This document shows, piece after piece, positions 821 to 48,573 of a DNA stretch of 64,000 nt (positions within the stretch are counted from its first letter, which is position 1; each line of letters opens with the position of its first letter). The stretch spans positions 248,001 through 312,000 of IMG/VR virus record IMGVR_UViG_3300049793_000366; one strand, given 5' to 3'. The translations under genes were made by a program, and so were the position numbers. The notes below the pieces were generated by a model. That model was not told the origin of the DNA. It ran no database searches and saw nothing but the letters and a program-made list of their open reading frames with translations.

Positions 821-847
821 TTATATCATTTTAAGTATATATTGTTT
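821..847 (-). promoter_or_regulatory. Putative phage middle promoter (AAAC-N16-GATATAA) for uvsW
   Basis: Matches the RAAC-N15/16-nnTAnAA motif recurring upstream of replication genes. Confidence 0.6.
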
Positions 848-909
848 TTGTTCAGTTTTATACGAGGGAGAAGACTATTACGGATATATAAAAGAAAAAT
901 CTAAAAATC

Positions 910-1305
910 ATGGAATTTTTAAAGAAAATAGCGAAATGGTGGAACGAAGACGTTAGAGGAAAAAAATGCACGGATGCTACGAAGTGTACCGAAAGTACAA
1001 CTTGTTGTGCTGAAGTTAAGTTAGAAGCTCCTGTTGCTGAAACTCAAGTTGTTGAAGAAATCAAAACTGGGTTACCTATCGAGAATTATATTCCACAGGT
1101 AGAAGATGAGGCTAAGGAAGTTATCACGATGTCTCCTGTTTCTGTAACTGAAACACCGGCTGCTGAGAATGAATTATCTCCTGCTGAGAAAGTAGAAAAG
1201 AAGAAATCAGCTTCTCCTGCTAAAGCACCAGCTAAAAAGAAGAAGCCTTCTAATAAGAATAAGGCTAAGAAATCCCCTACACCTAAGAAGCCAAAAGCAG
1301 AATAA
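910..1305 (+). CDS. Hypothetical protein with acidic middle and Lys/Pro-rich histone-like tail
   Basis: ORF; low-complexity KKKK/PAK tail; GATATATA at 883-890. Confidence 0.65.
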   Translation: MEFLKKIAKWWNEDVRGKKCTDATKCTESTTCCAEVKLEAPVAETQVVEEIKTGLPIENYIPQVEDEAKEVITMSPVSVTETPAAENELSPAEKVEKKKSASPAKAPAKKKKPSNKNKAKKSPTPKKPKAE

Positions 1306-2793
1306 TTACTCTGCTTCTGCTTCGGCGGTAGGTTCTGGTACAGGAACTTCCTCAACGGAAGTTTCCATGTCCGGGCTCAATGCTGTTTCTAACGTTGTTA
1401 GTGCGGTATCTAACCAAGTAGATGCTCTACTTCTCCTTCGAGTAGTTCTTGCTGGTCGAGCTTGTTCTTGAGACCTTTCATATTCTATCTCATTAGTTCT
1501 TTGCTCAAGGTAGCTTGTCATTATTGATATGATATCACTACGCTCGTGTATGGTTCTATAATGATTATTTAAGATGTCAATAATCTCACCTTCAGTGATG
1601 ATTTTATTTTCAATCTTTTCCAATTCTTCTTTAACAACCTTATCACGATTTTTGATAGCATCAAGTCTTTGATTTATCAATTCTCGGTCATTGAATTCTT
1701 CGAAGTTTTCATTGAAAATGTAATCATCAAATTCTCTGATGAATTCAGAATCATCACGCAATAAATAACAATCATTTATAGAAGACCAGTATAAATTGCA
1801 CTCTGCTGTATTAAACGGTTCTTCTTTGGATTTATAGTGAAGATTTTTCAGCAAATCTTTATGCTCATAGGCATCTGTTAGACTATCTACACCCAATGAT
1901 CCTGCGTATCGATTAACAGAACCATCACCAGAGATAAGAACTTTAATGTTGTTCTCGTTATCTGGTTTGTAGTTGAATAACTCACCAGTCTCAGTATTTA
2001 TCCATTTGAACGTATCAACATATGGATAGTATTCAAATGAGAAATTCTTAAGCTTAAGTGAAAGTTTTTGACGAACTTGTTTACCATTTGATTCTAAATG
2101 ATAAGTCCAGTTCCAATTCTGTTTGGCTTTGTATAGAAACCCATTCTTATTAGCCCATTGTTTGAAGTAATAAGACCACTGTTCATCATTGATAGTGTAA
2201 ATTCTATCCATGACCTTATGTGATTCTAATTCCCACAATAACGCTCTACCAATTAACTTATCATCAGAGTCGAGAGCTATTAGCATTTTAACTGACTCTG
2301 GATTCTGTGTGTATAGTTCTAAGAATTTACCACAACCATCGTGCTTCATACAAGACTGTCCTAATGTACCAGCCTGGTCAGCATATGATGTATAGTGATA
2401 GAATTCCGGGATTTCATCGCCAGAAACAACCTTGAATTGTAAGTCTCTTTGTCCTACTACTGAACGTAATAGGTTTGAAAACTTTTCAACTTCTCTGTTA
2501 TCGAAGCAGTTGAAAATTTTATTTACGAACGAACCATATTTTGTATGGTATCGCGATGGTGATGTCCAAACATCTTCATCATTCTTCTGAATCTTCTCAA
2601 CACGTTCTGGTGTTAAGTATGATATTTTATACGGGTCGTCATTAGAGATAGATAAAAAATCAATATGATTTTCTACTAATCTACTCGCATCTATATTCTG
2701 AGAAGCGAGTAGGGCGGCAATCGGTGAATCTTCTTTTATTTGCTCTAAGTAGCGGTGAAAAGAATCAGAAATGTAAATGTGCTTAGACTTCAT
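1306..2793 (-). CDS. Conserved jumbo-phage hypothetical protein (SCM / GRALLW / MDRIY / YPYxDT motifs)
   Basis: Long ORF; start moved to ATG 2793 because the track TTG lies inside the -7 promoter box. Confidence 0.75.
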   Translation of the reverse strand: MKSKHIYISDSFHRYLEQIKEDSPIAALLASQNIDASRLVENHIDFLSISNDDPYKISYLTPERVEKIQKNDEDVWTSPSRYHTKYGSFVNKIFNCFDNREVEKFSNLLRSVVGQRDLQFKVVSGDEIPEFYHYTSYADQAGTLGQSCMKHDGCGKFLELYTQNPESVKMLIALDSDDKLIGRALLWELESHKVMDRIYTINDEQWSYYFKQWANKNGFLYKAKQNWNWTYHLESNGKQVRQKLSLKLKNFSFEYYPYVDTFKWINTETGELFNYKPDNENNIKVLISGDGSVNRYAGSLGVDSLTDAYEHKDLLKNLHYKSKEEPFNTAECNLYWSSINDCYLLRDDSEFIREFDDYIFNENFEEFNDRELINQRLDAIKNRDKVVKEELEKIENKIITEGEIIDILNNHYRTIHERSDIISIMTSYLEQRTNEIEYERSQEQARPARTTRRRSRASTWLDTALTTLETALSPDMETSVEEVPVPEPTAEAEAE

Positions 2794-2799
2794 ATTTGA

Positions 2800-2831
2800 C
2801 AAATGTATATAATTTAATCCTAATTACCAAA
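2800..2831 (-). promoter_or_regulatory. Bacteroidota sigma-A type early promoter TTTG-N20-TACATTTG
   Basis: -33/-7 consensus with 20 nt spacer, 6 nt before the ATG. Confidence 0.8.
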
Positions 2832-2833
2832 TT

Positions 2834-3178
2834 TTACGGACATAAAACTGGTTCAAATTTTCCCTCAATGACTGCTCCCTTCTCTACTGATAGCTGAGAA
2901 GCGGATATTGTTCCTTTTATTTTAGCTGTTGATTTTACCACTAAAAGTCCTGAAACACAGATAGTTCCGTCAAATAGTCCGGAAATCTCTGCTTCGCCAC
3001 TTTTTAGTGATCCTTCGTAACTACCTGATTTACCGATGGTTGACTTTCCGACTATATCGGCTTTCCCGATGAATGACCCGTCCAGTCTTATATTTTCCCC
3101 AGTTAACTCACCACTAATGTGTGTACCTTCACCGAAGATGTTTACTGAGATATTTTTTGATGTTGCTTTTGTGAACAT
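2834..3178 (-). CDS. Bactofilin (CcmA / polymer-forming cytoskeletal family)
   Basis: Beta-helix Gly/hydrophobic pattern IFGEGTHISGEL...IRLDG...IKGTISASQLSVEKGAVIEG. Confidence 0.85.
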   Translation of the reverse strand: MFTKATSKNISVNIFGEGTHISGELTGENIRLDGSFIGKADIVGKSTIGKSGSYEGSLKSGEAEISGLFDGTICVSGLLVVKSTAKIKGTISASQLSVEKGAVIEGKFEPVLCP

Positions 3179-3190
3179 ATTTTTTGGTTT

Positions 3191-4693: not shown

Positions 4694-4725
4694 CAAAGAT
4701 AATCTAATTATTGGACTTTTCCAAA
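4694..4725 (-). promoter_or_regulatory. Bacteroidota sigma-A type early promoter TTTG-N20-TATCTTTG
   Basis: Consensus -33/-7 boxes, 20 nt spacer. Confidence 0.8.
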
Positions 4726-5988
4726 TGTTTTTTCTAATCTATTATTAAATATGGACTCAATTTCGGACTTCCACTTCTTAGGAAATACAATAGAATCGTG
4801 AATTGTAAACAACTTAACATCCGGATATTTGGTCATTATTTCTTTAATTACCTCATTGAAAATAAACTGAGACTCAGCACGTTGAAGCTCGTGAGCTAAA
4901 GTACGGTGGTTCTTATTAAGATTCTTATAAGTCTTGATGAAATCGTGGATGGTTGGGAAGACTTTATGGAATAAATTATCTTCTTTTGCTTTTCTGTGGT
5001 TAGTTCCAAAGAAAACCTTGTAAATCAGAGTTTTAACTTCTTTCTTATCTTTAATACCCAAGCAATCCATCAAATGTTGATATAATAATCCTTCGTGTGT
5101 TAAAAATTTAAATAGTTCGTATTCCCTTGAGCTTATTACTAAGTTAAGCTCGTGAGCATCAATAATTTTGGTTAGAAATAACGGTTGTGAGTTTGAAATA
5201 TCTACTTCACAAACTTCTTCACCATCTATCATAAGATGCGTCTTTCTAATATATGATTTGAGTCTGGTAAAGTTTGTATGAAATCTACCATATTCATCAA
5301 AATGATAATGTATGTGTTTTTCGTGAATACAATCTATTGCATATCGGTTACTGTTATAAACATCAATATCCCTTCTTAATTTATCAACATAGTCATCAGC
5401 TTGTTCTTTATCAATTGATATGTAGAATAAATCATTTACTAATTTCTCCTGTATATGTTTCTCAATATTAGACTCAATGGTATCGTTCTCATTAGATACA
5501 TTGATTTTATATTTCTTAAGTAATGTACTATCGTAGTTTTTAAATCGCTTGCTTGTGCCTACAAATAGCTCTGGTGATAATTCAAATGTTTTACAACGTG
5601 AGCGTTGCTTACAATAATTGTGTATTAGTTTCAATACACCACTTTGATTTAGGTATTCGAGATAGTGATTATAGTCAGTGCCATATTTTTCTCTTAGAAT
5701 TTCAGATGAAAGTCTTATGGCTAATTTCTTTTCGTAGTAATATTTGAACATCAAACCACTTGTGATGTCTATTAGATATGAAACTTTTAGTCGAACTTCT
5801 TTGTCAATCTGAGCTTTCTTTTTCCTTGAGTATATACTTCGTTTTAAGAAGACATATTTCTGTGACGAAATAGATTCAAGTTGTGGTGGTAATAATTGTA
5901 ATAAGTACTTTTTGCTTTTTAATTTATTCTTTGTGTCTAAAGCATGAGCGGATGTTTTTACTGTTGGTCTTTCAAGTTCGAGTAGCAT
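4708..5988 (-). CDS. Minimal family-A polymerase-fold protein with no exonuclease domain
   Basis: GRFHT, EVDISNSQP (motif A), KTLIYKVFFG (motif B-like), LQRAES, IHDSI (motif C); start set at ATG 5988, downstream of the promoter. Confidence 0.65.
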   Translation of the reverse strand: MLLELERPTVKTSAHALDTKNKLKSKKYLLQLLPPQLESISSQKYVFLKRSIYSRKKKAQIDKEVRLKVSYLIDITSGLMFKYYYEKKLAIRLSSEILREKYGTDYNHYLEYLNQSGVLKLIHNYCKQRSRCKTFELSPELFVGTSKRFKNYDSTLLKKYKINVSNENDTIESNIEKHIQEKLVNDLFYISIDKEQADDYVDKLRRDIDVYNSNRYAIDCIHEKHIHYHFDEYGRFHTNFTRLKSYIRKTHLMIDGEEVCEVDISNSQPLFLTKIIDAHELNLVISSREYELFKFLTHEGLLYQHLMDCLGIKDKKEVKTLIYKVFFGTNHRKAKEDNLFHKVFPTIHDFIKTYKNLNKNHRTLAHELQRAESQFIFNEVIKEIMTKYPDVKLFTIHDSIVFPKKWKSEIESIFNNRLEKTFGKVQ

Positions 5989-6011
5989 TAAAATTGATAA
6001 TTCTTTTTTAG

Positions 6012-6038
6012 TTCTATGTAAAAAAGAAATCAAAGTTC
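6012..6038 (-). promoter_or_regulatory. Putative middle promoter GAAC-N16-CATAGAA
   Basis: Recurring motif. Confidence 0.6.
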
Positions 6039-7621: not shown

Positions 7622-7665
7622 TATATATTAAATTTTGGTTTTGTTCAAACAATATTTAATATATA
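7622..7665. promoter_or_regulatory. Divergent pair of putative late promoters (AATATATA)
   Basis: AATATATA on minus at 7622-7629 and on plus at 7658-7665. Confidence 0.6.
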
Positions 7666-19340: not shown

Positions 19341-21032
19341 TTATTGAACTTCTTCTATATTAGAGAAGATATCTTTATTAATTCTTATAATCCTATCAAA
19401 ATACTCCTGACTCAAAATAGAGTGATGTACTAAGAAGATATTGATGTTATAATCATTAGCAAACGCACGTAATAGCTCCAATATTGAATAAATACCCTCA
19501 ACATCAATTGAAGCGAAAACCTCATCTAAGAATAGAATATTAATGTGTCGCTTAGTTCTTATTAACTTTAAATAGGCAATCATAATTGCAATATTTACTT
19601 TCTTAGTTTCACCAGTTGATAGACTTTCATGTTCTACTTCACTTGACAATACTTTAATAGTAGCCGTGAATGTATCATCCAATATTACTTCAAATGGTAG
19701 ACCCATTTGCTTAATGTTCTCAGCAATGAAGTGGTTAATCGGTTTAATGATTGACGATATAATAGACTTCTTAACACCATCTTCTGAGAAGATTTTAGAA
19801 AGTTCTTTGTAGTATAATTCCTTATCCTTACAGTTATAAGAGTTATCCTGTGATATAGTCTTCTTCTCAGTTAATTCTACAATAGTGTTTTTAAATTCTG
19901 CTGTATTATCACTTGAATTGTCTTCATTGATTGACTCTTGTTGTTTCTGTAATTGCTCTAATTTAGTTTTAAGGTTGCGTAAGTAATAAGTCATATCATT
20001 ATAGACTTTATTGGTCTCATTAGATATACCAGTCAATTTATTCTGACGTTCTCTTATTGCTTTAATATTATTCTCAAGCTCAATTCTCATAGCATCCAAT
20101 GATGCTTTCTTCTCAACCAAACTATCTTTAAATTCGCTATGAATAGCATCAGTTAAATCGGATTGACAGGTAGGACACTTACCCAACTCATATAAGTCAA
20201 GTTGCTTCTGAACGTTCTTAATTTCATTCTGGATAGTGATGAATTCTTTCTTCTCTTTATCAATCTCATCGGTCAATTCTTTTTCCTTAACCTTTATTCT
20301 TTCAATCTTATCCTTTAAAGTTTGATACTCATCTTTCTTAGATGATATGTCTTCCTTAATTTGTTCTATCTCTACTTGCTTTGATTCTTTCTCTTTCTGA
20401 ATCGCTGTTTCGATTGAACGCTTGATAGAGTTTATTGAATCTTCGAGAGTTCTTATCTCAGAGTCTAATCTTACTATCTGTGCTTTATTCTCTTTATTGA
20501 TATCTTTTAATATTGAATTTAATATATTGATAACTTCTAAATTGAATAACTTATCCAATAACAATTGCTTTTCTTCTGTTGATAATGATATGAAGTTTTT
20601 GAAGTCGTTTATACTCATTGATATGAAAGACTTGAAAGTTTCTATATCTACCCCAACATACTTTTGTATCTTATCTTCAAGATTTGATTTACCAGCTTTG
20701 TCATTAGGTATACCATTTTCGATTAGGGTTAAAACATTCGGGTTTAGACCACGTTGTATTTCAACTTCTGTTCCGTTTGAAACAAATTCAATTTTAGTGA
20801 ATAATTCGTTGTTGATTCTGTTTGGTAGAGTTGCTTGTGTAACCCATTTTTTCCTTTTTCCTCTAACTTTACCGTAGAGTGAATAATCGATTGATTCTAT
20901 CAGAGAAGATTTCCCGTTACCGTTCTGCCCGACTAATAATATTAGTTCGCCTTTTTCTGTATTTAATACTAAGTGTTGTTCGTTGTTTCCAAATGATTTG
21001 AAGTTACGTAGACTGATGCCTTTTATAATCAT
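19341..21032 (-). CDS. gp46: gp46/SbcC/Rad50-like recombination ATPase
   Basis: GQNGNGKSS, CPTC hook, coiled coil, LSTGE, FLDEVF, VHH. Confidence 0.95.
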   Translation of the reverse strand: MIIKGISLRNFKSFGNNEQHLVLNTEKGELILLVGQNGNGKSSLIESIDYSLYGKVRGKRKKWVTQATLPNRINNELFTKIEFVSNGTEVEIQRGLNPNVLTLIENGIPNDKAGKSNLEDKIQKYVGVDIETFKSFISMSINDFKNFISLSTEEKQLLLDKLFNLEVINILNSILKDINKENKAQIVRLDSEIRTLEDSINSIKRSIETAIQKEKESKQVEIEQIKEDISSKKDEYQTLKDKIERIKVKEKELTDEIDKEKKEFITIQNEIKNVQKQLDLYELGKCPTCQSDLTDAIHSEFKDSLVEKKASLDAMRIELENNIKAIRERQNKLTGISNETNKVYNDMTYYLRNLKTKLEQLQKQQESINEDNSSDNTAEFKNTIVELTEKKTISQDNSYNCKDKELYYKELSKIFSEDGVKKSIISSIIKPINHFIAENIKQMGLPFEVILDDTFTATIKVLSSEVEHESLSTGETKKVNIAIMIAYLKLIRTKRHINILFLDEVFASIDVEGIYSILELLRAFANDYNINIFLVHHSILSQEYFDRIIRINKDIFSNIEEVQ

Positions 21033-21058
21033 GCATATTCGTTAATTTTTCTCTTGTA

Positions 21059-21093
21059 TTCTATGCTTTTATTGTTGAATTGTTTAATATATA
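21059..21093. promoter_or_regulatory. Back-to-back middle (minus, AAAC-N16-CATAGAA) and late (plus, AATATATA) promoters
   Basis: Motifs at 21059-21085 and 21086-21093. Confidence 0.6.
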
Positions 21094-23116: not shown

Positions 23117-23314
23117 TTATTCTTCTTTTAATAATTCGTCTATTTTAGTTTCTCTGTTTGACATTTTAATTCTGCTTATCAATTCATCAGATGTACTATT
23201 TAGATATTCTGTATATGAGATGCTTTTATCCAACTCTTTTGCTATATACTCAGAATAGTCAATTTGTGCATTTAATGCTTCCATAACATATTCTTGGTAG
23301 CTAATTGTGTTCAT
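23117..23314 (-). CDS. Small protein with 14-aa YxEY repeats and C-terminal R-tag (NRETKIDELL)
   Basis: ISYQEYV / IDYSEYI / ISYTEYL. Confidence 0.7.
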   Translation of the reverse strand: MNTISYQEYVMEALNAQIDYSEYIAKELDKSISYTEYLNSTSDELISRIKMSNRETKIDELLKEE

Positions 23315-23516
23315 CTATGACAATTTTTATTTTTTCATCTCGTTTTCTACTACCGAAAGTAGATACTATTTCATTTAACTCAGATAAATCATCTGGTATT
23401 GAACCAGCGTTATACCAATTGCCATCCAAAAACACACATATTATACTTTCATCTGCGTTAAAAAAACAATCTCCATGTTGTGGGTTCTTAATAGGACCTG
23501 ATAACCAATTTAGCAC
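23301..23516 (-). CDS. Small protein with fibre-like P..GD.FFN...W motif and C-terminal R-tag (KRDEKIKIVI)
   Basis: ORF after a middle promoter. Confidence 0.65.
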   Translation of the reverse strand: MLNWLSGPIKNPQHGDCFFNADESIICVFLDGNWYNAGSIPDDLSELNEIVSTFGSRKRDEKIKIVIDEHN

Positions 23517-23521
23517 TTTGG

Positions 23522-23548
23522 TTATAGTAAATTCATCTATGTTTGTTT
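23522..23548 (-). promoter_or_regulatory. Putative middle promoter AAAC-N16-ACTATAA
   Basis: Recurring motif. Confidence 0.55.
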
Positions 23549-28301: not shown

Positions 28302-28309
28302 ACAATTAA

Positions 28310-28335
28310 TTATACTCAGAAGAGTGTGATTGTTT
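28310..28335 (-). promoter_or_regulatory. Putative middle promoter AAAC-N15-AGTATAA
   Basis: Recurring motif directly upstream of the polymerase subunit. Confidence 0.6.
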
Positions 28336-28341: not shown

Positions 28342-29292
28342 TTATGATACTAATTTTTCCAAATTATTTATCCGCTTCCATTCTTTAGTTCCCATAAATA
28401 TTAGCTCATATTCTTGTAGAAAAGCTGCATAACTACCCATAACTTTTATGGCATCTTCTGCCCATTTGGAATCTCTGTTTGGTACTAAGTGATATGGAAT
28501 CCATTGTTTGACGTATATGTTTTTATCATCATAAACAAGGTCTTTGAAATGATTCTCACCATTAGGAGTACCGAGTATTGTTATCTTAGTGTTTTTTCGC
28601 GCTATTGCTGTTAGTTGATATACTTGACTGAATCTTCTTACAGCAGTAGGTGATAAGTGACCATAACCATCTACAATAGTAAAATCATAAGTCATACCCA
28701 AAGTTGAACCAGCACTGCCGTAGAATGTTCCTATTTTAATACATGAGCCATTATCGAATACTATTCTACTATTTGACATACTGAGTATACCAAGTTTAGC
28801 ATAGTAAGGTAAATTCTCATATAGAATTTTAATTTTTTCTAAAATTCTTTTAGCACCATCTATTTTATTATCCGTTATAAGTATTTTCTTATCATCCTGA
28901 TATGCATAGTGTAAAGCTTGTAATGCCAATATCAATGTCATTCCACTTTGTCTGGAATTGATTATAGTGTTAAACCTATTTGATTTGTAATTTTGTAAGG
29001 CTTGTGCTTGATATGGACGAAGTGAGACTGATGCGTAGCCTAAGTTACCAGTTAATGTTTTTGTAAGAGATAATAAATACTCAGGATCATCTTGTATTTT
29101 AAGTTTAGATGCTATTTCTTCTTCTGTGTAGTCGAATATAATACCAGATGCGCGATGTGCCTCATTTCTCCTATAATATGGTTGTGTGCGTGGGTATTCT
29201 GGTTCAATACCTAATAAACCTCCTAATTTCTTATCTCGGTTCTTTTGTTTCTCACTTCTACATTCTAATAATTCTGTTGACCAATTACTCAT
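28342..29292 (-). CDS. Degenerate terminase large-subunit ATPase domain (gp17-like) with R-tags at both ends
   Basis: LRPYQ, SRQSGMT (K>M), IVDGY (DE>DG), GTPNGENHF, FLQEYEL; no nuclease domain. Confidence 0.8.
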   Translation of the reverse strand: MSNWSTELLECRSEKQKNRDKKLGGLLGIEPEYPRTQPYYRRNEAHRASGIIFDYTEEEIASKLKIQDDPEYLLSLTKTLTGNLGYASVSLRPYQAQALQNYKSNRFNTIINSRQSGMTLILALQALHYAYQDDKKILITDNKIDGAKRILEKIKILYENLPYYAKLGILSMSNSRIVFDNGSCIKIGTFYGSAGSTLGMTYDFTIVDGYGHLSPTAVRRFSQVYQLTAIARKNTKITILGTPNGENHFKDLVYDDKNIYVKQWIPYHLVPNRDSKWAEDAIKVMGSYAAFLQEYELIFMGTKEWKRINNLEKLVS

Positions 29293-29854
29293 TTATAAAA
29301 TCGCGTACTATTTTCTCTGCTTCAAGCAGTGCAATATCTAAATCACGATTTAGTATTTGATAGTCGAACTTATCTGCTGTTTTTAGTTCAGTTTCCGCTT
29401 TATCTAAGCGTCTTTCTATACTCTCAGGTGTTTCGGTTCGTCTTAACTTCAATCGTTCTTCTAAGTCTTTAATAGAGGGTGGTAATACTATTATTGATAT
29501 GGCTTTATCACCAAATTGCTTTTTAAGATTTAAAGCACCAATAACATCCATATCAAATATCACATCTTTACCATTTTCCCATATTCTATTCACTTCTGAC
29601 TTTAATGTACCATAGAAATTATTGGTATATACCTCTTCCCATTCAACAAATTCTTCTTTTTCAATTTTATTTTTGAACTCATCAATTGATAGAAAATGGT
29701 AGTCTTTACCATCGATTTCGCCCCTTCTTATTGGGCGACTCGTTGCTGATATAGAAAATGATATTTCATTACTTAAAATACTCAGCAAATGCTTTACTAT
29801 CGTGGTTTTACCAGCTCCAGATGGTGCCGCAAATATTATTAATTTACCCTTCAT
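29285..29854 (-). CDS. gmk: Guanylate kinase
   Basis: APSGAGKTT, SATSRPIR.GE.DG.DYHF, YGT, DMDVIGA. Confidence 0.95.
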   Translation of the reverse strand: MKGKLIIFAAPSGAGKTTIVKHLLSILSNEISFSISATSRPIRRGEIDGKDYHFLSIDEFKNKIEKEEFVEWEEVYTNNFYGTLKSEVNRIWENGKDVIFDMDVIGALNLKKQFGDKAISIIVLPPSIKDLEERLKLRRTETPESIERRLDKAETELKTADKFDYQILNRDLDIALLEAEKIVRDFINE

Positions 29855-29874
29855 AGACTTAATTACTTTAGAAC

Positions 29875-29909
29875 TTATATTCATAAAGAGATGATTGTTT
29901 CAATATATA
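29875..29909. promoter_or_regulatory. Back-to-back middle (minus, AAAC-N15-AATATAA) and late (plus, AATATATA) promoters
   Basis: Motifs at 29875-29900 and 29902-29909. Confidence 0.6.
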
Positions 29910-30390: not shown

Positions 30391-31087
30391 GTGCTAACTC
30401 TCTTGATACGCTTTTCATCTCATTATATTGCTCTTCGTTTACGATGACACTAAGCTCTTTCAATTTACCAACTTCGTGTAGATTGTAACCACCTCTTATT
30501 TCAACCTTGTCATCCGTTACTGATGCGTCAACAACTGATAATTCAAGTATTGATGATTTTTTACCGAATAAAATTCGAGTATCGAAATAATTTATATATG
30601 GGTCAACATAGAGTGGTATATTATTCCATCTACCGACTACATCTATTATACCAGCACTACCATTTCTAATTCTTGCATCTGGTGTGTAATACATTGAATC
30701 TTGTAGATATGAACCAATTTGTGCATTTGTTATAATAAAATCAGCTTCTCTGGTTTCATACGCTAACCTTATATCTAAATCTCTAAGTATATCTTTATAT
30801 TCAAATGATATAACGCCATTTATATGACTAAATACAAATCCTGCTTTTTCAGCACTGTCATAAATTGTTTGACATAGTTTCCTTTGAATTTGTGTGATGT
30901 ATTGTTCTATTATAGCAGTAGTAAATCGTCCTTCACCAACTGAATCGAATGCTGGGTCGTTTCTATTTATAGCTATGCTAATACCAATCTCTTCTGATAG
31001 TGTATTTACTTTTGGTGTAGACCAATTAAATATTTCTATTATCTTTAACTTGTTTATTAAATTTGCTGTTATATTTTCTTTTAGCAT
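30371..31087 (-). CDS. Truncated gp23-like major capsid paralog with degenerate R-tag (start uncertain)
   Basis: ADFIITNAQIGSYL...VGRWNNIPLYVDPY...ILFGKK resembles the gp23 C-terminal half; ends SRELALIKMGI. Confidence 0.6.
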   Translation of the reverse strand: MLKENITANLINKLKIIEIFNWSTPKVNTLSEEIGISIAINRNDPAFDSVGEGRFTTAIIEQYITQIQRKLCQTIYDSAEKAGFVFSHINGVISFEYKDILRDLDIRLAYETREADFIITNAQIGSYLQDSMYYTPDARIRNGSAGIIDVVGRWNNIPLYVDPYINYFDTRILFGKKSSILELSVVDASVTDDKVEIRGGYNLHEVGKLKELSVIVNEEQYNEMKSVSRELALIKMGI

Positions 31088-32234
31088 CCGGATTGTACTC
31101 TTTTTTTTGCTTAGGGATCCACACCGCATCGTATTGGTCTCTAGAGAAAAACTTTGGTAAGTCTAACTTCTTATATGGGTCACCACCTGTAAGCTGTGCT
31201 AACTTATTTAAATCTTTTATAGCTGATATCCTTTGTAAGTAAGTAAATGGGTCTGATGGCTTTTTCTTCTCTATTAAATTATCAAACAATTTCTTCCAAA
31301 GAAATACAGAGAAGCCTTCTTTTAATTTCATTGCTGAGTTCTTATGTCCTGTACCATCATTATCAAAGAAATATTGCATATCGAGATTGGCTTCTATGAA
31401 TCTCATGTCAGTATTAACACCAACAACACCAATAGAATTAGGATAGAACAATGAGTCGAGATATCCTTCGAATACTGTTACTTTTTCCATAACATCGATA
31501 TTTAAAATACCAAAATAATAAGATAGCTTATTATATAGTACCAATTCGTTTAAGTCAAAGTCTGCTAATTTTTCCTCACCATATAACCATTTGTATAAAC
31601 TCTCATAATTATAGATTTTGAAAAATCTGGCTCTACCATCTTTCATATTTCTAATCTGCATCCCTAATACTTTACCACCTCTTCTATTCAGAAGACATAT
31701 AATACCTTCTTTTGATTCAGCATTTCTCCAATAGTTACCTTCATAAATATTACTAATTACATCTTCTGGTATACCTCGTTTTGTAACCAGGTAGTGATAT
31801 GTTGGTGAACCTTTTTCTACTGGTTTAAAATCTGTTATTGGTGTTTCGTATGTATTGAATAGCTTAGTCAATTCTTCCAAAGAAAGAAGTTTACTCATCT
31901 GTGTCTCAACCGCATTGTCCTCGAAGTCTGAATAAGTTACATTACTTGCTATGTGTTCTATGATTTCCAATTTAACACCAGGGTCCAATTGTTGATTGAA
32001 ATCTCGACACATCTTATCAAACGATGTTCTGTGGTCACAGTTAAAGCAAACGAATATTAATTTATTCCACCATATATTTCCTCTCTTGGCATTTCGGTCA
32101 GTAGAAGAGTCACCACAATATGGACAAGCAAAATTCATCCTATCGTGGTAGTCATATATACGTCTCTTCTCAACCAATTTAAATTGGGTGTTAAGTATGT
32201 CTTGAAGACTATTTTTTATATATGATTTGTCCAT
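31026..32234 (-). CDS. gp61: DNA primase (gp61-like)
   Basis: CPYCGDS...CFNC zinc domain; Toprim FEGYLDS, FFDND. Confidence 0.9.
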   Translation of the reverse strand: MDKSYIKNSLQDILNTQFKLVEKRRIYDYHDRMNFACPYCGDSSTDRNAKRGNIWWNKLIFVCFNCDHRTSFDKMCRDFNQQLDPGVKLEIIEHIASNVTYSDFEDNAVETQMSKLLSLEELTKLFNTYETPITDFKPVEKGSPTYHYLVTKRGIPEDVISNIYEGNYWRNAESKEGIICLLNRRGGKVLGMQIRNMKDGRARFFKIYNYESLYKWLYGEEKLADFDLNELVLYNKLSYYFGILNIDVMEKVTVFEGYLDSLFYPNSIGVVGVNTDMRFIEANLDMQYFFDNDGTGHKNSAMKLKEGFSVFLWKKLFDNLIEKKKPSDPFTYLQRISAIKDLNKLAQLTGGDPYKKLDLPKFFSRDQYDAVWIPKQKKEYNPDAKRKYNSKFNKQVKDNRNI

Positions 32235-32236: not shown

Positions 32237-32298
32237 TTTGGATTTTAAGCCTAAATTTATTATCTTTACATATTGTATTATTTTTTTAGAAATGGTTT
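32237..32298. promoter_or_regulatory. Face-to-face early (plus, TTTG-N20-TATCTTTA) and middle (minus, AAAC-N15-AATACAA) promoters
   Basis: Motifs at 32237-32268 and 32273-32298. Confidence 0.65.
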
Positions 32299-37163: not shown

Positions 37164-37189
37164 AAACTTTTTGATTTTACATCATAGAA
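37164..37189 (+). promoter_or_regulatory. Putative middle promoter AAAC-N15-CATAGAA
   Basis: Recurring motif. Confidence 0.6.
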
Positions 37190-37213
37190 GTAAAATAACT
37201 TAAATTTTACTAT

Positions 37214-38374
37214 ATGATTATTAACTTAAAATCAAAAACAGATTTATCTGGTATCTACGTTGTTTACACTGGGTCTACAAACTTAGAAAAAGCAGGATGG
37301 TACGGACTATCACATTTAATGGAGCATTTAATGTGTAAAACTTTCGACCATTTACAAGAAGAATTTGACCAAGACGGTATCGACTGGAATGCTTGGACAT
37401 CTGACAACGAGATTGTATTTTATCTAACTGGTTTAGATAAGAAAATCGAGAAGTGGAAATATAAATTTGTAGAGTTACTTGGTAACTTCACAATTACTGA
37501 TGAACAGCTTCAAAACGAAAAGCGAATTGTACTTGAAGAGTATATGGATTCGTTTAACGGTCAAGCTGAAGCACACTTTCAGAATCTATCAAGAAAAAAG
37601 TTCGGTCACTACTCACCAATTGGTTTGAGAAAAGACATCGAGAACACAACTCTTAAAGACTGTAAAGACTTCTTCGACTTACAGTATGCTAAGCCAACTA
37701 AAATTATCAATGTATCAGCTAAATCTAAATTTGATGCTGATGTAGAGTTTTCAACAACTGAAATAGCACCAGATTATAAATTCGGTGATTATGATGTAGA
37801 ACTTGAGTTAAATAACGACTTCAAAGACAAAACATCAATTATCATGTTAACACCATTAATCGAAGAAGACTTCGCTTATGTTAACATCATCACTGCTATG
37901 TTGGGTTATGGTTTGAACTCACCTTTATATCAAGAAGTTCGTGAGAACAGAGGATTGTGTTATTACATATCAACTTATCAATCAAGAATGTTTGATAAAG
38001 GTATCGTTAGTATCTCAACAGTAACATCTAATGCAAATGCTCAAGCTGTTATTGACACGGTTAAAATGGTATTAGCAGATCCGGATAAATATTTGACAAA
38101 AGAAAGGTTGAATACGATTATCGAGAACATGAAAGTTCGTAAGAAGAAATCAAAAATCAATCGTTATAACAATGTTTATAAATGGATTGGACCGAGTGAG
38201 TGGTCAAATGATGATATAATTGATACCATCAAATTAAAAGACATCAAGAAAGTATATAAAAAATACTTCAACCCTGATATGTTATACATATCAAATGATA
38301 AAACCGAATTCACTACACCAAAAGAATCAAAAGCTAAAAAGGCACCAGCTAAAAAAGTTAAAAGTGCCCAATAG
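37214..38374 (+). CDS. M16 (insulinase) zinc peptidase
   Basis: HLMEH, NAWT, EKRIVLEE, SPLYQEVRENRGLCY. Confidence 0.9.
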   Translation: MIINLKSKTDLSGIYVVYTGSTNLEKAGWYGLSHLMEHLMCKTFDHLQEEFDQDGIDWNAWTSDNEIVFYLTGLDKKIEKWKYKFVELLGNFTITDEQLQNEKRIVLEEYMDSFNGQAEAHFQNLSRKKFGHYSPIGLRKDIENTTLKDCKDFFDLQYAKPTKIINVSAKSKFDADVEFSTTEIAPDYKFGDYDVELELNNDFKDKTSIIMLTPLIEEDFAYVNIITAMLGYGLNSPLYQEVRENRGLCYYISTYQSRMFDKGIVSISTVTSNANAQAVIDTVKMVLADPDKYLTKERLNTIIENMKVRKKKSKINRYNNVYKWIGPSEWSNDDIIDTIKLKDIKKVYKKYFNPDMLYISNDKTEFTTPKESKAKKAPAKKVKSAQ

Positions 38375-38891: not shown

Positions 38892-39323
38892 ATGAATACA
38901 ATTGACTCCTTTGACGGAGAATATAGATTTTTATCAAACTTCTGGCCATGTGTGGTTGTTTATGATGGTATTACATATCCATCTACTGAACATTATTATG
39001 TAGCAATGAAAACCACTGACCCTTCATTAAGAAAGCAAGCTTCTCTTGTGTCAACTTCTGGTCAAGTTAAAAAGTTCGGAAGAACTCTTGAGTTACGTCC
39101 TGATTGGGATGATGTTAAACTTCAAGTAATGGAATATGCCTTAAAACAAAAATTTGCTGACCCTGAATTACGTGCTAAACTAATAGCAACTGGTGACGCT
39201 GAATTAATTGAAGGCAATTGGTGGGGTGATGTATTCTGGGGCGTTTGTAAAGGTAAAGGTGAGAATCACCTTGGTCGTTTATTAATGAAACTTAGAAAAG
39301 AAATTACTTCAAATTCTCAATAG
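38892..39323 (+). CDS. NADAR (YbiA-like) family protein
   Basis: FLSNF, STEHYY.A.K, KKFGR, L.QKF, LIEGN.WGD.FWG, GENHLG.LLM. Confidence 0.92.
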   Translation: MNTIDSFDGEYRFLSNFWPCVVVYDGITYPSTEHYYVAMKTTDPSLRKQASLVSTSGQVKKFGRTLELRPDWDDVKLQVMEYALKQKFADPELRAKLIATGDAELIEGNWWGDVFWGVCKGKGENHLGRLLMKLRKEITSNSQ

Positions 39324-40047
39324 CAAAGTTATAGTGTTCTTCTTTTAGTTCACTACCTATATAATCTCTACCCATCTTAATACAACCTTTAGCTGTTGTT
39401 CCAGAACCCATAAATGGGTCATATATTAATGAACCTACTGGGAAGTAAACATCAATTAACTGACAAACTAAATCTGTTGAATATAGAGCTTTCAATGGTG
39501 CCTTATTTTGGTCATTGTTTGGTGCTTCAATATAATTAAGATAGTTTTTATAGAACTTCTGTTTAGTCTTTTCGTTTATTTTAGAGATAGTCTTATTAGC
39601 AGTGAAATTAGTAAGATGTTTCTTCTGAACAAAAACATACACTGGTTCAACTATTCTGGATAGCTTAGTTGGGCTTGTTTGAAATGGAATTGCATTCGAT
39701 TTCTTCCAGTAAATAATATCTGCTAATGTAAGATCCGTTTCTTGGTGAACCTTTGCTACTAATAGATTAGGTAGTACCGGATTTTCGTGTGTATATGAAA
39801 GATTATATAATACAACTCCGGTATCTTTCACTACTCTCTGAAACTCTTTAAACTCACTTAATCTAACAGATAGATATTCCTCTTCGGTTAGATTATCGAA
39901 CTCAGCATATCCCGTATTATAATACATATCACTACGAGTGGTTGATATATTATAAGGCGGTGAACAAATGACACCATCGATGAAATTATCGGGCATTTTG
40001 TTCATAGTATTTAAACAATTCTCGTGGAATATGTTGTTTCTAAGCAT
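39304..40047 (-). CDS. DNA amino-methyltransferase (beta class, SPPY, probably N4-cytosine)
   Basis: CSPPY before DPFMGSGTT. Confidence 0.9.
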   Translation of the reverse strand: MLRNNIFHENCLNTMNKMPDNFIDGVICSPPYNISTTRSDMYYNTGYAEFDNLTEEEYLSVRLSEFKEFQRVVKDTGVVLYNLSYTHENPVLPNLLVAKVHQETDLTLADIIYWKKSNAIPFQTSPTKLSRIVEPVYVFVQKKHLTNFTANKTISKINEKTKQKFYKNYLNYIEAPNNDQNKAPLKALYSTDLVCQLIDVYFPVGSLIYDPFMGSGTTAKGCIKMGRDYIGSELKEEHYNFAIENLK

Positions 40048-40053
40048 ATTAAC

Positions 40054-40118
40054 TTATATGTTAAAAACGAAGTTGGTTGATAACTTTGCTTAAACTTTTT
40101 CAGTGATATCAGATACAA
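40054..40118. promoter_or_regulatory. Divergent middle promoters
   Basis: CAAC-N15-CATATAA on minus (40054-40079); AAAC-N16-GATACAA on plus (40092-40118). Confidence 0.55.
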
Positions 40119-40123
40119 CTTCA

Positions 40124-40387
40124 ATGAAAGTTATGTGTATTCAAAACAATTTGGATAATAAACCAGTGAAAAATATCACTGTTGGTAAAGTTTATGTAGC
40201 TCAGGATGTGACAGATATGAAAAAACAATTTGCACATCAATCAGAAAGTCCGTATATTTTCAATATTCCTGATAAGGACGTATATCAGATACCAGATGAT
40301 GCTGGTGGTAGATATAGTCTTTATGATATTAGGTTATTTAAACCGATATCAGAAATAAGGTATGAAAAACTAAATTTGTTGTTATGA
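40124..40387 (+). CDS. Small SH3-like protein with C-terminal R-tag (IRYEKLNLLL)
   Basis: MKVMCI...ITVGKVY; motif. Confidence 0.7.
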   Translation: MKVMCIQNNLDNKPVKNITVGKVYVAQDVTDMKKQFAHQSESPYIFNIPDKDVYQIPDDAGGRYSLYDIRLFKPISEIRYEKLNLLL

Positions 40388-43132: not shown

Positions 43133-44098
43133 TTAAAATTTACGCTCATTTAAATATTTTAAGAAGTTAAAAGACATATCTTCTTTACCGGCAATCATTT
43201 CCCTTGTAATCTTTATCTCTTCTACATTATCCCATGTTAGTCCTTTTTCTATGAAATGTTCAGCCGCATCTTTAGCTACTTTTGATTTAACGGTTTTACA
43301 GGCAATTCCATACATAGCAAAGAATCTTTGTAGAACCTTAGCACATCTTAAACCAGCCTGGTCATCATCCGCCCATATTGTTATGCTTTTTGGGTAATAT
43401 TCTATCACTTTTAGTAACTGTGGACCTGACCACATCGCTGATGATACTGATATTGCTTCTTTACCTTGTTTAATGAGTGCCATCATATCAAATAGACCTT
43501 CACAGATGAAGATTTCATGTGATTTGAGGTTATTTATATTCCAAACCGACAAATCCGGACAAGCTAAACCATATTTTAGCTTACCAATGTCTGATAATTT
43601 ACGAATAGCGCAATTTACAAGCTTATTATTCTCAAATAGTGGAATAAGTATGCCACCACCTTCTAAGCCATCGGATAATATTGGTGCTAAAAGCGGATGA
43701 ACAGTGCAATTAAGTATCTCTAATGCTCTGTGGTCGGTTATATAGCTCATTCCACCAAGTTTGTATGTATCAATCATACTATTATCTATACCACGAGCAT
43801 TTAACCAATTTCTTTCTAAATCTGATATATTTTTATGGGCATCCAATACTAAATCAGTCAAATTGCTTAAATCCAGTGGTTTAACTAAGACATCAGGTGC
43901 GTTCATATCTATTTGACTCTTCTCCACCTCAACCATTCTATCTTCTTGATAGATGTTCTGAACCCATTCTATTTTACTCTCGATATCGTCCAGTAAATCC
44001 CAATTTAAATCACTTGGTACGAAATTCTGTACAACACCTTCTACTGAGCGATTATTGTATAAAATGAAAGCTAATTCATCCGTTTTCCACTTCTTCAT
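43133..44098 (-). CDS. Second Toprim primase-like protein lacking the zinc-binding domain
   Basis: WLNARGI, ILIPL, ICEGLFD, WADDDQAG, KDAAE. Confidence 0.8.
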   Translation of the reverse strand: MKKWKTDELAFILYNNRSVEGVVQNFVPSDLNWDLLDDIESKIEWVQNIYQEDRMVEVEKSQIDMNAPDVLVKPLDLSNLTDLVLDAHKNISDLERNWLNARGIDNSMIDTYKLGGMSYITDHRALEILNCTVHPLLAPILSDGLEGGGILIPLFENNKLVNCAIRKLSDIGKLKYGLACPDLSVWNINNLKSHEIFICEGLFDMMALIKQGKEAISVSSAMWSGPQLLKVIEYYPKSITIWADDDQAGLRCAKVLQRFFAMYGIACKTVKSKVAKDAAEHFIEKGLTWDNVEEIKITREMIAGKEDMSFNFLKYLNERKF

Positions 44099-44116
44099 AG
44101 GTCATGTTATTTTGTA

Positions 44117-44157
44117 TTGTATTTATTTGGATATTCAATGTTCATTTTGTATATTTG
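44117..44157. promoter_or_regulatory. Overlapping divergent middle (minus, GAAC-N16-AATACAA) and early (plus, TTTG-N20-TATATTTG) promoters
   Basis: Motifs at 44117-44143 and 44126-44157. Confidence 0.7.
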
Positions 44158-46434: not shown

Positions 46435-46744
46435 AGGCAACGCTACATGGAAGTGTAAAATTACAATGTCTTCATCACCAAGAATGGAGAATGCAATATG
46501 GAAACAAGATTTTATAAAAGATAAATGGTACGATGTAGAATATGAGATTCATTCAAATCCTGAAACAGCGAGAATAAATGGTGGTTACAGAAAGATATGG
46601 GTGGTTAATGAGTCTGGTAAAAGAGTTGAGTTTGGTTCTACGCACATTAGGATTATGTTCCATAACGAATACAACAAAACTGATATGAGGGAAAGTCAAA
46701 TTGATAATATTTTAAACGACGATGGACACAGCGAGAATACTTAA
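46424..46744 (+). CDS. Hypothetical protein with C-terminal R-tag (MRESQIDNIL)
   Basis: ORF; motif. Confidence 0.65.
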   Translation: MYIKGNATWKCKITMSSSPRMENAIWKQDFIKDKWYDVEYEIHSNPETARINGGYRKIWVVNESGKRVEFGSTHIRIMFHNEYNKTDMRESQIDNILNDDGHSENT

Positions 46745-47792
46745 ACAATTAAAGCTTGAAATACCTGATGATAGCATAAGACAAACATATCTTATGATGT
46801 TACTATCAAAATCATCCGGTAGTGATTCATTTAAAGGTGTTACTGATTCAGTATTGTTATCAATGGAAGATATGTTCAAAGATAAAGATGGTATATTCAA
46901 TGATATGTATAATGATATACTAAGAGAAAAGCAATCACGTAGAAATAATAAGTTAGAAAGTCTAAATTTAAAGAGTATGAAAAGATTTGAATTCAACGCA
47001 AACAATATGGTTGATGCTTCTCATTATATTTATAACCGAGCTATTCAGTTATTGAAATATGGTGTTAAACTAAAGTCTATGGACGAAGTTGGCTTCGGTG
47101 TTGATGCTACATTCATCTATAATGGTGAAGAATATCATGGTATATACATACTCGAAGAATTCAGAGGTAAAAAGCTCTATGATTCTTATGTCAAAACAAA
47201 TGACTATAAAGTAATCACACATATCGATTGTCAGATAGAAGATTATTTGAAGAAACATAATATTGAATATGTTTGTTTAGGTGAATTTGAACAAACACCG
47301 GAGTATAAATGGATGCAAAGTATTTATGGTGATGATAGAGCTAAACGTTCTGATGTTTACTTTATGAATCATGTAGATGAAGGTCTTGCTGTATTAGAAT
47401 GGATTGGTGCCTCTGATGTTGCGAAAAGAGCATATACTCTTCATCCTATTTTTCAATCTGATGAAGACTTGAAGAATAATTACAATGCTGATTATAAGGA
47501 TATAGATGCTAAAGTAATTGTTGCTTCAATGGAATATCGTTCTGTTGCTAATGAATATTTATCAACCAGAAGCATCAATGATATATCAGAGATTAGACTA
47601 TCACCATTGAAAGATGTGAATGATATGTTAATTGCTGATAAGGTTCAGAATTACAAAGACTTCGAACAATATCACATGGGTAAACACATTCGTTCTATTG
47701 AATTGAATGAATATTTTATCAATTGGTTAATGAAATTAGGCGTAAGAATGAATTACGAAAAATGGAAAAGAGACTTACAAATAAAATTCTAA
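46722..47792 (+). CDS. Fusion of an R-tagged 85-aa module, a GNAT-like segment and a SpoT/Mesh1-like HD-fold domain
   Basis: RRNNKLESL; IYILEEFRGKKL; RAKRS..YFMNH, AYTLHP, LIADKVQN. Confidence 0.55.
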   Translation: MDTARILKQLKLEIPDDSIRQTYLMMLLSKSSGSDSFKGVTDSVLLSMEDMFKDKDGIFNDMYNDILREKQSRRNNKLESLNLKSMKRFEFNANNMVDASHYIYNRAIQLLKYGVKLKSMDEVGFGVDATFIYNGEEYHGIYILEEFRGKKLYDSYVKTNDYKVITHIDCQIEDYLKKHNIEYVCLGEFEQTPEYKWMQSIYGDDRAKRSDVYFMNHVDEGLAVLEWIGASDVAKRAYTLHPIFQSDEDLKNNYNADYKDIDAKVIVASMEYRSVANEYLSTRSINDISEIRLSPLKDVNDMLIADKVQNYKDFEQYHMGKHIRSIELNEYFINWLMKLGVRMNYEKWKRDLQIKF

Positions 47793-48127
47793 AAAAGAAT
47801 TTAGAAATACATATTTTAGAATCAGAGATTGCCTTTTCATATATGCTACGTAAGAGAGAAGCATATGAAAGAGGTTCTGATGTTGATCCATTTCAAGTAT
47901 TTACTTATAATGAAATTATAACTAAGTTAGATAGACCATTGTGTGTAATGAAGAATGCAATGCAATTGGACTTAGAAGATGATAAAAATTATAGTAATAC
48001 TTTTTCATATATCTGTATGTCAATGTCTGAGAGGGGTAATAATGAATTTAAAGCAAATGATTTTAAGAGTTATAGAGATAGTTATATAAGAGAAAATAAA
48101 ATAGAAAGCATATTAAATGATATCTGA
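47762..48127 (+). CDS. Hypothetical protein with C-terminal R-tag (IRENKIESIL)
   Basis: ORF; start uncertain. Confidence 0.65.
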   Translation: MEKRLTNKILKKNLEIHILESEIAFSYMLRKREAYERGSDVDPFQVFTYNEIITKLDRPLCVMKNAMQLDLEDDKNYSNTFSYICMSMSERGNNEFKANDFKSYRDSYIRENKIESILNDI

Positions 48128-48545
48128 AATTAAAGACATACTTAAAGAGGGTAAGATAGAAACGTTGGAACAATTTAAGCCCATATTTATGGGATTTGCT
48201 GATGTCACTTATTCATATTGTGGTTATATAAGAACATCTGTTTATGTAAAGGCAAAAGAAGCTGGTGAGTTAGAATATTATAAAGAGAAATCAAATCAAT
48301 GGGAAGTGTTTATGCGAGGTCATGTTGATTTGTTTATTGATATGTATGAGCAAGACCGTTATATGTCAGTTTATAACAATAGTAATCTAGAAATGTTATT
48401 TAATCAAGTGGGTACAGTATGGCAAAATGTATCACAACTATCAGAAGAAGCTAACTACCGATTGGATCTTAATTTACTCACTTTTATGAATTATTACAGA
48501 GATTTAATCAGAGTGGATAAGCTTAATAATTTATTAAAAGAATAG
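48117..48545 (+). CDS. Hypothetical protein with C-terminal R-tag (IRVDKLNNLL)
   Basis: ORF; motif. Confidence 0.7.
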   Translation: MISEIKDILKEGKIETLEQFKPIFMGFADVTYSYCGYIRTSVYVKAKEAGELEYYKEKSNQWEVFMRGHVDLFIDMYEQDRYMSVYNNSNLEMLFNQVGTVWQNVSQLSEEANYRLDLNLLTFMNYYRDLIRVDKLNNLLKE

Positions 48546-48547
48546 TA

Positions 48548-48573
48548 GAACTTTCATCCCAATAGCTATATAA
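48548..48573 (+). promoter_or_regulatory. Putative middle promoter GAAC-N15-TATATAA
   Basis: Recurring motif. Confidence 0.6.

Follow-up and report, generated by a model that had tools for sequence, protein, structure and literature searches.

A 508-kb soil megaphage carries about 85 copies of a putative two-box promoter and encodes an ECF-type sigma factor that probably reads it

The genome of a 508-kb T4-like megaphage of Bacteroidota, recovered from soil, carries about 85 copies of a two-box promoter motif, lying mostly in front of DNA-replication genes, and also encodes an ECF-type sigma factor that probably recognizes it. Together with two further promoter classes and a gp55-like late sigma gene, this suggests a three-step sigma cascade, inferred from sequence alone. 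The starting point was a first-pass annotation of a 64,000-nt window (positions 248,001 to 312,000 of IMGVR_UViG_3300049793_000366), which described 12 copies of the motif RAAC-N15/16-nnTAnAA with fixed spacing as marking a replication regulon, and inferred from the AAC in the -35 element that middle transcription uses a phage-encoded or hijacked ECF-like sigma factor. Our analysis confirms that the motif and its 12 sites are real, and the inference of an ECF-like sigma factor is supported by the remainder of the genome, which that annotation did not cover.

A conserved two-box motif in front of genes

All 12 sites exist within 1 nt of the positions given, and a weight matrix trained genome-wide recovers each of them, plus a 13th that lies outside the range the first-pass annotation covered. 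The motif is referred to here as class M, and the sites in the window are as follows.

820-847 (-), weak M-class site, 12.9 bits, 13 nt before the ATG of the uvsW-like helicase (3-812); it overlaps an L-class box (see below) at about 843, so its class is ambiguous
6011-6038 (-), M-class promoter (GAAC, N18, TAGAAC), 17.2 bits, before an ORF without assigned function (4708-5988)
21058-21085 (-), M-class promoter, 15.9 bits, before the Rad50/gp46-like gene (19341-21032); the motif is kept upstream of the orthologue in related contigs
23521-23548 (-), M-class promoter, 17.7 bits, with its TATAAC box 4 nt before the GTG of a 71-aa ORF (23301-23516, -), a leaderless-type layout
28309-28335 (-), M-class promoter, 16.8 bits, before the family-B DNA polymerase ORF (26856-28301)
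29874-29900 (-), M-class promoter, 16.1 bits, before guanylate kinase (gmk), whose likely true start is the second Met (ATG at 29854), 25 nt after the first T of the -10 box
32272-32298 (-), M-class promoter, 16.7 bits, before the primase-like ORF (31026-32234)
37164-37190 (+), M-class promoter, 17.6 bits, before the M16 peptidase (37214-38374)
40053-40079 (-), M-class promoter, CAAC variant, 15.3 bits, with its -10 box 5 nt before the ATG of the DNA methylase (39304-40047), a leaderless-type layout
40092-40119 (+), M-class promoter, the best in the window at 18.9 bits, with its -10 box 4 nt before the ATG of an 87-aa ORF (40124-40387); it faces away from the 40053 site
44116-44143 (-), weak M-class site, 12.6 bits, before the Toprim-domain ORF (43133-44098)
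48548-48574 (+), M-class promoter, 13.4 bits, before adenylate kinase (adk, 48597-49160)
63646-63672 (-), the additional M-class promoter, 17.1 bits, with its -10 box 4 nt before the ATG of a 190-aa ORF (63069-63641)

The sites at 821 and 44117 are the weakest of the original 12. Family searches support the labels given to the uvsW-like helicase, Rad50/gp46-like, PolB, primase, gmk, M16 peptidase, DNA methylase, Toprim and adk genes, but the label "PolA-like" given to 4708-5988 has no support, as no Pfam or PHROG hit was found.

The refined motif is tAAAC(ttt), followed by 17 or 18 nt and then TAtAAt, with the information carried by the two boxes. The spacing is fixed as claimed; measured from the C of AAC to the T of the -10 box it is 17 nt in 44 sites, 18 in 39, 19 in 3 and 20 in 1, out of 87. 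Whether the motif is any more frequent than in random AT-rich intergenic DNA had been named beforehand as a test. The pattern as originally written is too loose to stand out over the whole window, where 23 + 8 matches (31) were observed against 17.6 + 9.5 (about 27) expected from dinucleotide shuffles. The signal is in where the matches lie. Genome-wide, 90 of 263 pattern matches fall in the 7% of DNA that is intergenic, and within intergenic DNA there are 69 matches against 15.4 ± 3.8 in shuffles. At 14 bits or more the matrix gives 71 intergenic and 17 coding hits, compared with 22 in total for a Markov-1 random genome. The matrix was trained on this genome and its scores within the genome are therefore partly circular, whereas the pattern-based test and the tests in relatives are not. 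The gene calls are crude, being the longest ORFs chosen greedily.

The placement of the sites is that of a bacterial-type promoter. Of 83 intergenic sites, 78 point at the gene they precede (null expectation 57%, p = 5e-14), and the distance from the -10 T to the start codon is bimodal, with 26 sites at 7–13 nt, none at 14–20 nt and 32 at 21–36 nt. A transcription start about 11 nt after that T would give this pattern, since very short leaders are avoided. This is indirect support only, as the sequence was found in a single DNA run, from a soil metagenome, and in no RNA run.

Conservation in related phage contigs is consistent with this reading. The motif sits upstream of Rad50/gp46 orthologues in 25 of 39 related contigs at 12 bits or more and in 36 of 39 at 9 bits or more, including a clade with only 36–38% protein identity, and upstream of the gp55-like gene in 47 of 51 distinct relatives, against 1 of 80 shuffles. 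In both cases the two boxes are kept while the spacer sequence varies.

The regulon is genome-wide and wider than replication. Replication genes dominate the downstream set, which holds DNA polymerase, helicase, SSB, topoisomerase II, SbcD, Rad50, exonuclease, primase, methylase, gmk and adk, but it also includes proteases, thioredoxin, a glycosyltransferase and both sigma genes. The window itself is not specially enriched, holding 13–14 of about 86 sites in 12.6% of the genome.

Candidate sigma factors and an inferred three-step cascade

The genome encodes exactly one clear sigma-70 family gene (genome 112758-113378, outside the window), and its 206-aa product is ECF-type. It has regions 2 and 4 only (Pfam r2 at residues 28–96 and r4_2 at 142–190), scores 92.8 bits on TIGR02937 against a cut-off of 42.9, and has B. 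subtilis SigW as its nearest solved relative. Region-2 homologues occur in 4 of 5 large related contigs. An M site lies upstream of the sigma gene here, although it is only moderate (14 bits, CAAC variant), and also in the relatives designated L009, L010 and L012–L015 (13.7–20.4 bits); self-activation is typical of ECF sigmas (PMC5758882). The -35 box with its T-tract matches the published ECF form tgaAACntttt (PMC5758882). However, the -10 box, TAtAAt, is not the CGT-type box (CGTA or CGTC) of characterized ECF sigmas (PMC5758882, PMC9723704), so that the assignment of factor to motif rests on the -35 box, the spacing, self-regulation and elimination. No anti-sigma gene was recognized beside the sigma gene, whose downstream neighbour is a thioredoxin with its own M site.

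M is one of three promoter classes in the genome. Class E (TTTG, N20, TAtaTTTG) resembles the host sigma-A promoter, matching the Bacteroidota sigma-A boxes with TAnnTTTG at -12 to -5 (PMC9723704), whereas M lacks both the TTTG at -33 and the TAnnTTTG at -7. Class L, TTTAATATATA, is a single -10-type box without a conserved -35 box, found before the portal, gp23-like capsid and sheath genes. A gp55-like late sigma gene is present (phrog_234, E = 1.4e-7) and is itself preceded by an M promoter. No RNA polymerase beta subunit, AsiA or MotA was detected in the genome; the searches for MotA and AsiA (PF09114 and PF09010) returned nothing, but their positive controls did not register either, so this absence is weak evidence.

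We consider it probable that the host RNA polymerase core reads M promoters when loaded with the phage's own ECF-type sigma. In this model, region 4 would bind the AAAC/T-tract box and region 2 would open the TAtAAt box. Host sigma-A would first read E-class promoters, including the one at 109573 that opens the strand block holding the sigma gene; the phage sigma would then boost its own gene through an M promoter and turn on replication, recombination and nucleotide-metabolism genes together with the gp55-like late sigma gene; and the late sigma would read class L in front of virion genes. The term "middle" fits this wiring. About a third of M promoters place the -10 box 4–5 nt before the start codon, so those mRNAs would be leaderless. 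Our analysis establishes the motif, its placement and orientation, its conservation in relatives, and the presence and type of the two sigma genes, whereas which factor reads which class, the timing and the positions of transcription starts are inferred.

A broader reading, which we regard as about as likely as not, is that a whole clade of T4-like megaphages of Bacteroidota, reaching to 25%-GC genomes of about 500 kb, runs a conserved relay of host sigma-A, phage ECF sigma and gp55-like sigma, in which the ECF-type sigma has taken the place of MotA/AsiA. One distant 25%-GC relative carries all three promoter classes. In this view the sigma would have an unusual hybrid specificity, pairing an ECF-like AAC/T-tract -35 box with a TATAAT-like -10 box, and all three tiers would often produce leaderless mRNAs, which are rare in the host phylum (5.5% in F. 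psychrophilum, PMC9723704).

Comparison with known systems

The closest counterparts are bacterial ECF (group 4) sigma promoters such as those of B. subtilis SigW/SigV (tgaAACntttt, about N16, CGTA; PMC5758882), which share the AAC-containing -35 box followed by a T-tract, a comparable spacing, a small sigma with regions 2 and 4 only, and a promoter of the same class in front of the sigma gene itself. The phage system differs in its -10 box, in the lack of an anti-sigma neighbour, and in that the sigma is phage-encoded and would drive about 85 promoters of a developmental programme rather than a stress regulon. In phiEco32, similarly, a phage sigma loads onto host core polymerase to switch from host-type early promoters to phage-specific ones (PMC12276001, PMC13401047), but its promoters have a single AATGTA box at -11.5 and need gp79 (PMC12276001), whereas here there are two boxes with an ECF-like -35, a separate gp55-like factor for late genes and a Bacteroidota host.

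T4 middle promoters, which combine a MotA box with a sigma-70 -10 box and use AsiA and MotA, occupy the same place in the programme, in front of replication and recombination genes and the late sigma gene, and the present genome is T4-like, with gp23, gp20, gp46/47, uvsW and gp55 homologues. However, the M box is AAAC rather than the TGCTT MotA box near -30, no MotA or AsiA was detected, and the -10 box differs from that of the host, so the mechanism looks like a replacement sigma and not appropriation. This suggests that T4-like phages solved the middle switch in at least two ways, by sigma appropriation in T4 and by a replacement ECF sigma here.

Group 2 jumbo phages (Iyer et al. 2021), which include Lak-type Bacteroidetes megaphages, also lack a phage RNA polymerase and carry a minimal gp55-type sigma plus a fuller sigma (PMC7824862), and a 2026 review expects such sigmas to read phage-specific promoters (PMC13282480). 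In the passages of these papers that we consulted the sigma genes are listed without promoter motifs; the motif, its regulon and the wiring are worked out here. Megaphages of this size are almost all uncultured, with gene-expression programmes that remain unknown, and a sequence-only map of three promoter classes gives a provisional early, middle or late label to each gene they precede, many of the 760 genes called in this genome having no family match, and the same map carries over to relatives. The sigma-promoter pair would be a compact, probably orthogonal expression part for Bacteroidota, and its TATAAT-like -10 box would be an informative case for how ECF region 2 reads DNA.

Alternative readings

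The alternative that survives best, although we consider it unlikely, is sigma appropriation as in T4, where host sigma-A still reads the -10 box while an unrecognized phage activator or adaptor binds the AAAC box and replaces -35 recognition, the ECF sigma serving some other purpose. The AAAC box is centred near -31/-32, close to where T4 places its MotA box (PMC2988021), and an activator could be hidden among the many phage ORFs without annotation. However, the M-class -10 box (TA.AA) differs from the E-class and host sigma-A box (TAnnTTTG; PMC9723704), and an unchanged host region 2 would not be expected to prefer it; no MotA or AsiA homologue was found; and the conserved, self-preceded ECF sigma would be left without a promoter set.

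Slightly less likely still is that M promoters mimic the target of a host envelope-stress ECF sigma activated by infection, with the phage sigma redundant or reading something else. Bacteroidota carry many ECF sigmas, for example 7 in F. psychrophilum (PMC9723704), and the window encodes a PrsW-family membrane protease. That family includes the B. subtilis enzyme that releases SigW from its anti-sigma. Against this, the phage sigma is conserved across the clade and carries an M promoter upstream, and known Flavobacterium ECF promoters have a CGT -10 box, not TAtAAt (PMC9723704).

It is very unlikely that M is read by some other phage factor or that the class assignments are swapped, for example with the ECF sigma reading L or E. 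The links between factors and classes are inferred, and E contains CGTA, which looks like an ECF -10 box; however, L has no conserved -35 box, which ECF sigmas need, E has the sigma-A boxes at the sigma-A spacing and lacks AAC, and the gp55-like protein has only a region-2-like segment, which suits a single-box promoter such as L and not the two-box M.

Finally, that the motif is a composition artefact of AT-rich spacers, or a binding site for a replication or packaging protein, draws only on the lack of enrichment of the loose pattern over the whole window and is already disfavoured by the intergenic enrichment against shuffles, the strand bias towards the downstream gene, the bimodal distance to start codons and the conservation of the two boxes, but not the spacer, in relatives.

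Genomic context and the likely host

The record is 507,910 bp long, and the window covers bases 248001-312000. It has 33% GC, and the standard genetic code fits. A megablast search with 8 kb of sequence against 50,697 phage records returned no match, and the only public sequencing run found to hold the window was a DNA run from a soil metagenome, probably the source sample. The phage is T4-like, as indicated by a gp23-type capsid, a gp20-type portal, a tail sheath, a uvsW-like helicase, Rad50/gp46, SbcD/gp47, a family-B polymerase, SSB and topoisomerase II. The host is almost certainly a member of Bacteroidota. This is supported by a promoter class carrying the special sigma-A boxes of that phylum (PMC9723704), by a window protein (50493-51065, +) with a type IX secretion C-terminal sorting domain (45.7 bits), and by the near-best NCBIfam match of the phage sigma factor to the Bacteroidetes-named subfamily model TIGR02985, although the score is below the cut-off of that model. 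The window also encodes a bactofilin (2834-3178, -; 68.7 bits).

Outside the window the genome carries 60 tRNA genes, one of them with an amber-suppressor (cta) anticodon, together with two further tRNA-like calls of uncertain anticodon and a tmRNA; these lie at genome 319.6-322, 391.7-394.4, 407.4-412.9 and 419.6-421.3 kb. Three of the tRNA arrays, near 319.8, 391.5 and 419.4 kb, are preceded by near-identical composite promoters in which an E box pair and an M box pair (classes described below) interleave, with -10 boxes 13 nt apart.

Position, specificity and conservation of the two-box motif

The observation made in the first-pass annotation, 12 fixed-spacing copies of a promoter-like motif, holds, with all 12 sites lying where it had placed them. 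Genes were called crudely (760 ORFs, 93% coding) and a two-block weight matrix, seeded with the originally proposed pattern, was trained on upstream regions only, since refinement over the whole genome had drifted into coding DNA. The matrix converged in two rounds on 87 sites with the consensus tAAAC(ttt), then 17 or 18 nt, then (a)TAtAAt. Scanning the window with this matrix returned each of the 12 sites within 1 nt and added a 13th at 63646-63672 on the minus strand. Of the genes previously placed behind these sites, the small ORF at 23516 is real, with a GTG start and 71 aa, and the guanylate kinase most likely starts at its second Met, which puts the promoter upstream of the gene rather than inside it. 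A strong TTGT-N16-GAAC dyad that was also recovered turned out to be tRNA T-arms and not a promoter.

As a bare pattern over the whole window the motif does not exceed chance, with 31 matches against about 27 expected. However, the condition set beforehand for rejecting it concerned AT-rich intergenic DNA, and there the motif passes, with 69 matches against 15.4 +/- 3.8 in shuffles. At 14 bits or more, 71 hits lie in the 7% of the genome that is intergenic and 17 in the 93% that is coding, while a Markov-1 random genome gives 22 in total; within-genome matrix scores are partly circular. Of 83 intergenic hits, 78 point at the gene downstream (null expectation 57%, p = 5e-14). The distance from the first T of the -10 box to the start codon is bimodal, with 26 sites at 7-13 nt, none at 14-20 nt and 32 at 21-36 nt. 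A transcription start about 11 nt after that T would produce this pattern, in which case the mRNA would be either leaderless or have a leader long enough for a ribosome.

The motif is also found in sequences outside this genome. Relatives of the clade to which this phage belongs number in the hundreds of contigs. Upstream of Rad50/gp46 orthologues, 25 of 39 usable related contigs reach 12 bits or more and 36 of 39 reach 9 bits or more, including a clade with only 36-38% protein identity, and the AAAC (sometimes TAAC) and TATAA boxes are kept while the spacer changes. In some of the relatives (loci L029, L052, L053, L054 and L058) the Rad50/gp46 match starts only at residue 42 and the DNA just upstream reads as coding sequence ending in an S-H-N-S-like motif, suggesting an intein or similar insertion in the P-loop region. 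Upstream of a highly conserved 121-aa gene, 47 of 51 distinct relatives reach 12 bits or more, against 1 of 80 shuffles. In 400 kb of a distant 25%-GC relative, all three promoter classes described below recur.

Three interleaved promoter classes

The commonest upstream motif in this genome is not the one first reported. Three classes were distinguished by computation alone:

Class L, tTTTAATATATAC, about 158-174 copies, a single box with no conserved -35 box; in the window at 7629(-), 7658(+), 17515(+), 21086(+), 41580(-), 43122(-) and 57554(-).
Class E, ATTTGG...TCCGTATATTTG, about 82-93 copies, consisting of TTTG, 20 nt, then TAtaTTTG; in the window at 2810(-), 4704(-), 32647(+), 38597(+), 50448(+) and 59347(+).
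Class M, the two-box motif first reported, about 86 copies.

Class E has the Bacteroidota sigma-A arrangement (PMC9723704), matching its -33/-7 boxes with an extra TCCG. The three classes are interleaved throughout the genome and the window. The window holds 13-14 of about 86 M sites in 12.6% of the genome and is thus not specially enriched. Some of the RAAC boxes first reported are also the reverse complement of the GTTT in the L box of a divergent neighbour, read as TATATATTAAAC; five such compact back-to-back pairs exist, and the M sites there still score well on their own strand. All three classes have a large subclass in which the -10 box ends 3-5 nt before the start codon (window examples 23521, 40053, 40092 and 63646). 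This implies many leaderless mRNAs, which are only 5.5% in Flavobacterium psychrophilum (PMC9723704).

Class M precedes genes for DNA polymerase, helicase, SSB, topoisomerase II large subunit, SbcD, Rad50, exonuclease, primase, a Toprim protein, DNA methylase, gmk and adk, and also for an HNH endonuclease, a Lon-like protease, an M16 peptidase, a glycosyltransferase and thioredoxin. The earlier label of a replication regulon is therefore fair but narrow. The family-B polymerase ORF of the window (26856-28301, -) matches only part of the Pfam profile, and a second DNA polymerase ORF of 505 aa located 170 kb away (genome 102182-103699, +) is also preceded by an M promoter, such that the polymerase may be split or there may be two. 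Directly downstream of the M-preceded gmk gene, on the same strand and among replication genes, lies an ORF with terminase large-subunit similarity (28342-29292, -; phrog_5989, 85.8 bits). Class L precedes genes for the portal, the gp23-like capsid, tail sheath and a tail-fibre-like protein and the giant unannotated ORFs, the 1860-aa and 2131-aa ORFs being among the genes behind it; it is probably the late promoter, read by a gp55-like factor. Class E, probably the early class, precedes mostly genes for unknown proteins, peptidases, NAD-dependent ligase and a NAMPT-like enzyme.

Candidate sigma factors and the inferred regulatory order

Family searches of the genome detected no RNA polymerase beta subunit (PF00562), and AsiA, MotA and phrog_12791 also gave no match; the absence of the last three is weak evidence, since these searches gave no hit in any control genome. 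The genome has exactly one clear sigma-70 family gene, at genome 112758-113378, encoding a 206-aa protein with regions 2 and 4 only, which scores 92.8 bits on TIGR02937 'sigma70-ECF' against a cut-off of 42.9 and whose nearest solved structure is B. subtilis SigW. A weak region-4 hit at genome 326998-327057 was rejected as a second sigma, being most likely an HTH-plus-HNH endonuclease, as judged by reading its ORF translation only. Region-2 homologues are present in 4 of 5 large related contigs, and the exception is only 46% complete. Published ECF promoters read tgaAACntttt, about 16 nt, then CGTA or CGTC, and ECF sigma genes have self-activating promoters (PMC5758882). Class M shares the AAC, the T-tract and the spacing; however, its -10 box is a misfit, as TAtAAt is not the ECF CGT type. 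Consistent with self-activation, the sigma gene is preceded by an M site in this phage (14 bits) and in relatives (13.7-20.4 bits). The interpretation offered in the first-pass annotation, that an ECF-like sigma factor serves these promoters, is thus supported on computational grounds, the link between factor and motif being inferred from resemblance, self-regulation, co-occurrence and elimination.

The wiring and timing of the three classes are likewise inferred. The sigma gene sits in a plus-strand block opened by an E promoter at 109573, so that host sigma-A could start its expression. A 121-aa protein at 89597-89962 has phrog_234, 'late sigma transcription factor' (the T4 gp55 family), as its only PHROG match (E = 1.4e-7); a PDB sequence search with this gp55-like protein found nothing meaningful. 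Its gene is preceded by an 18-bit M promoter that is conserved in relatives. A single-box L promoter suits a gp55-type factor, while a two-box M promoter suits a sigma that has region 4. This gives the inferred order E, then M, then L, which parallels the early, middle and late classes of T4, with a replacement sigma doing the job of MotA/AsiA.

Phage sigmas that redirect the host core polymerase are established for SPO1 and phiEco32 (PMC13401047, PMC12276001). Comparative work noted that T4-like jumbo phages, including Lak-type megaphages, encode a minimal and a fuller sigma (PMC7824862), and a 2026 review expects these to read phage-specific promoters (PMC13282480). In the papers we found, no description was seen of the promoter motifs themselves or of the wiring proposed here.

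A repeated AACGGCAAT element sits in the leader and right at the ATG of the ECF sigma gene (genome 112714, 112748 and 112768) and at the ATG of the SSB gene (230606); it is conserved in the relatives L009, L010 and L013-L015 and may be a translational operator. The window also encodes a PrsW-family intramembrane metalloprotease (57576-58337, +; 72 bits), which is of interest given the SigW-like phage sigma, as the founding member of this family releases SigW from its anti-sigma in B. subtilis.
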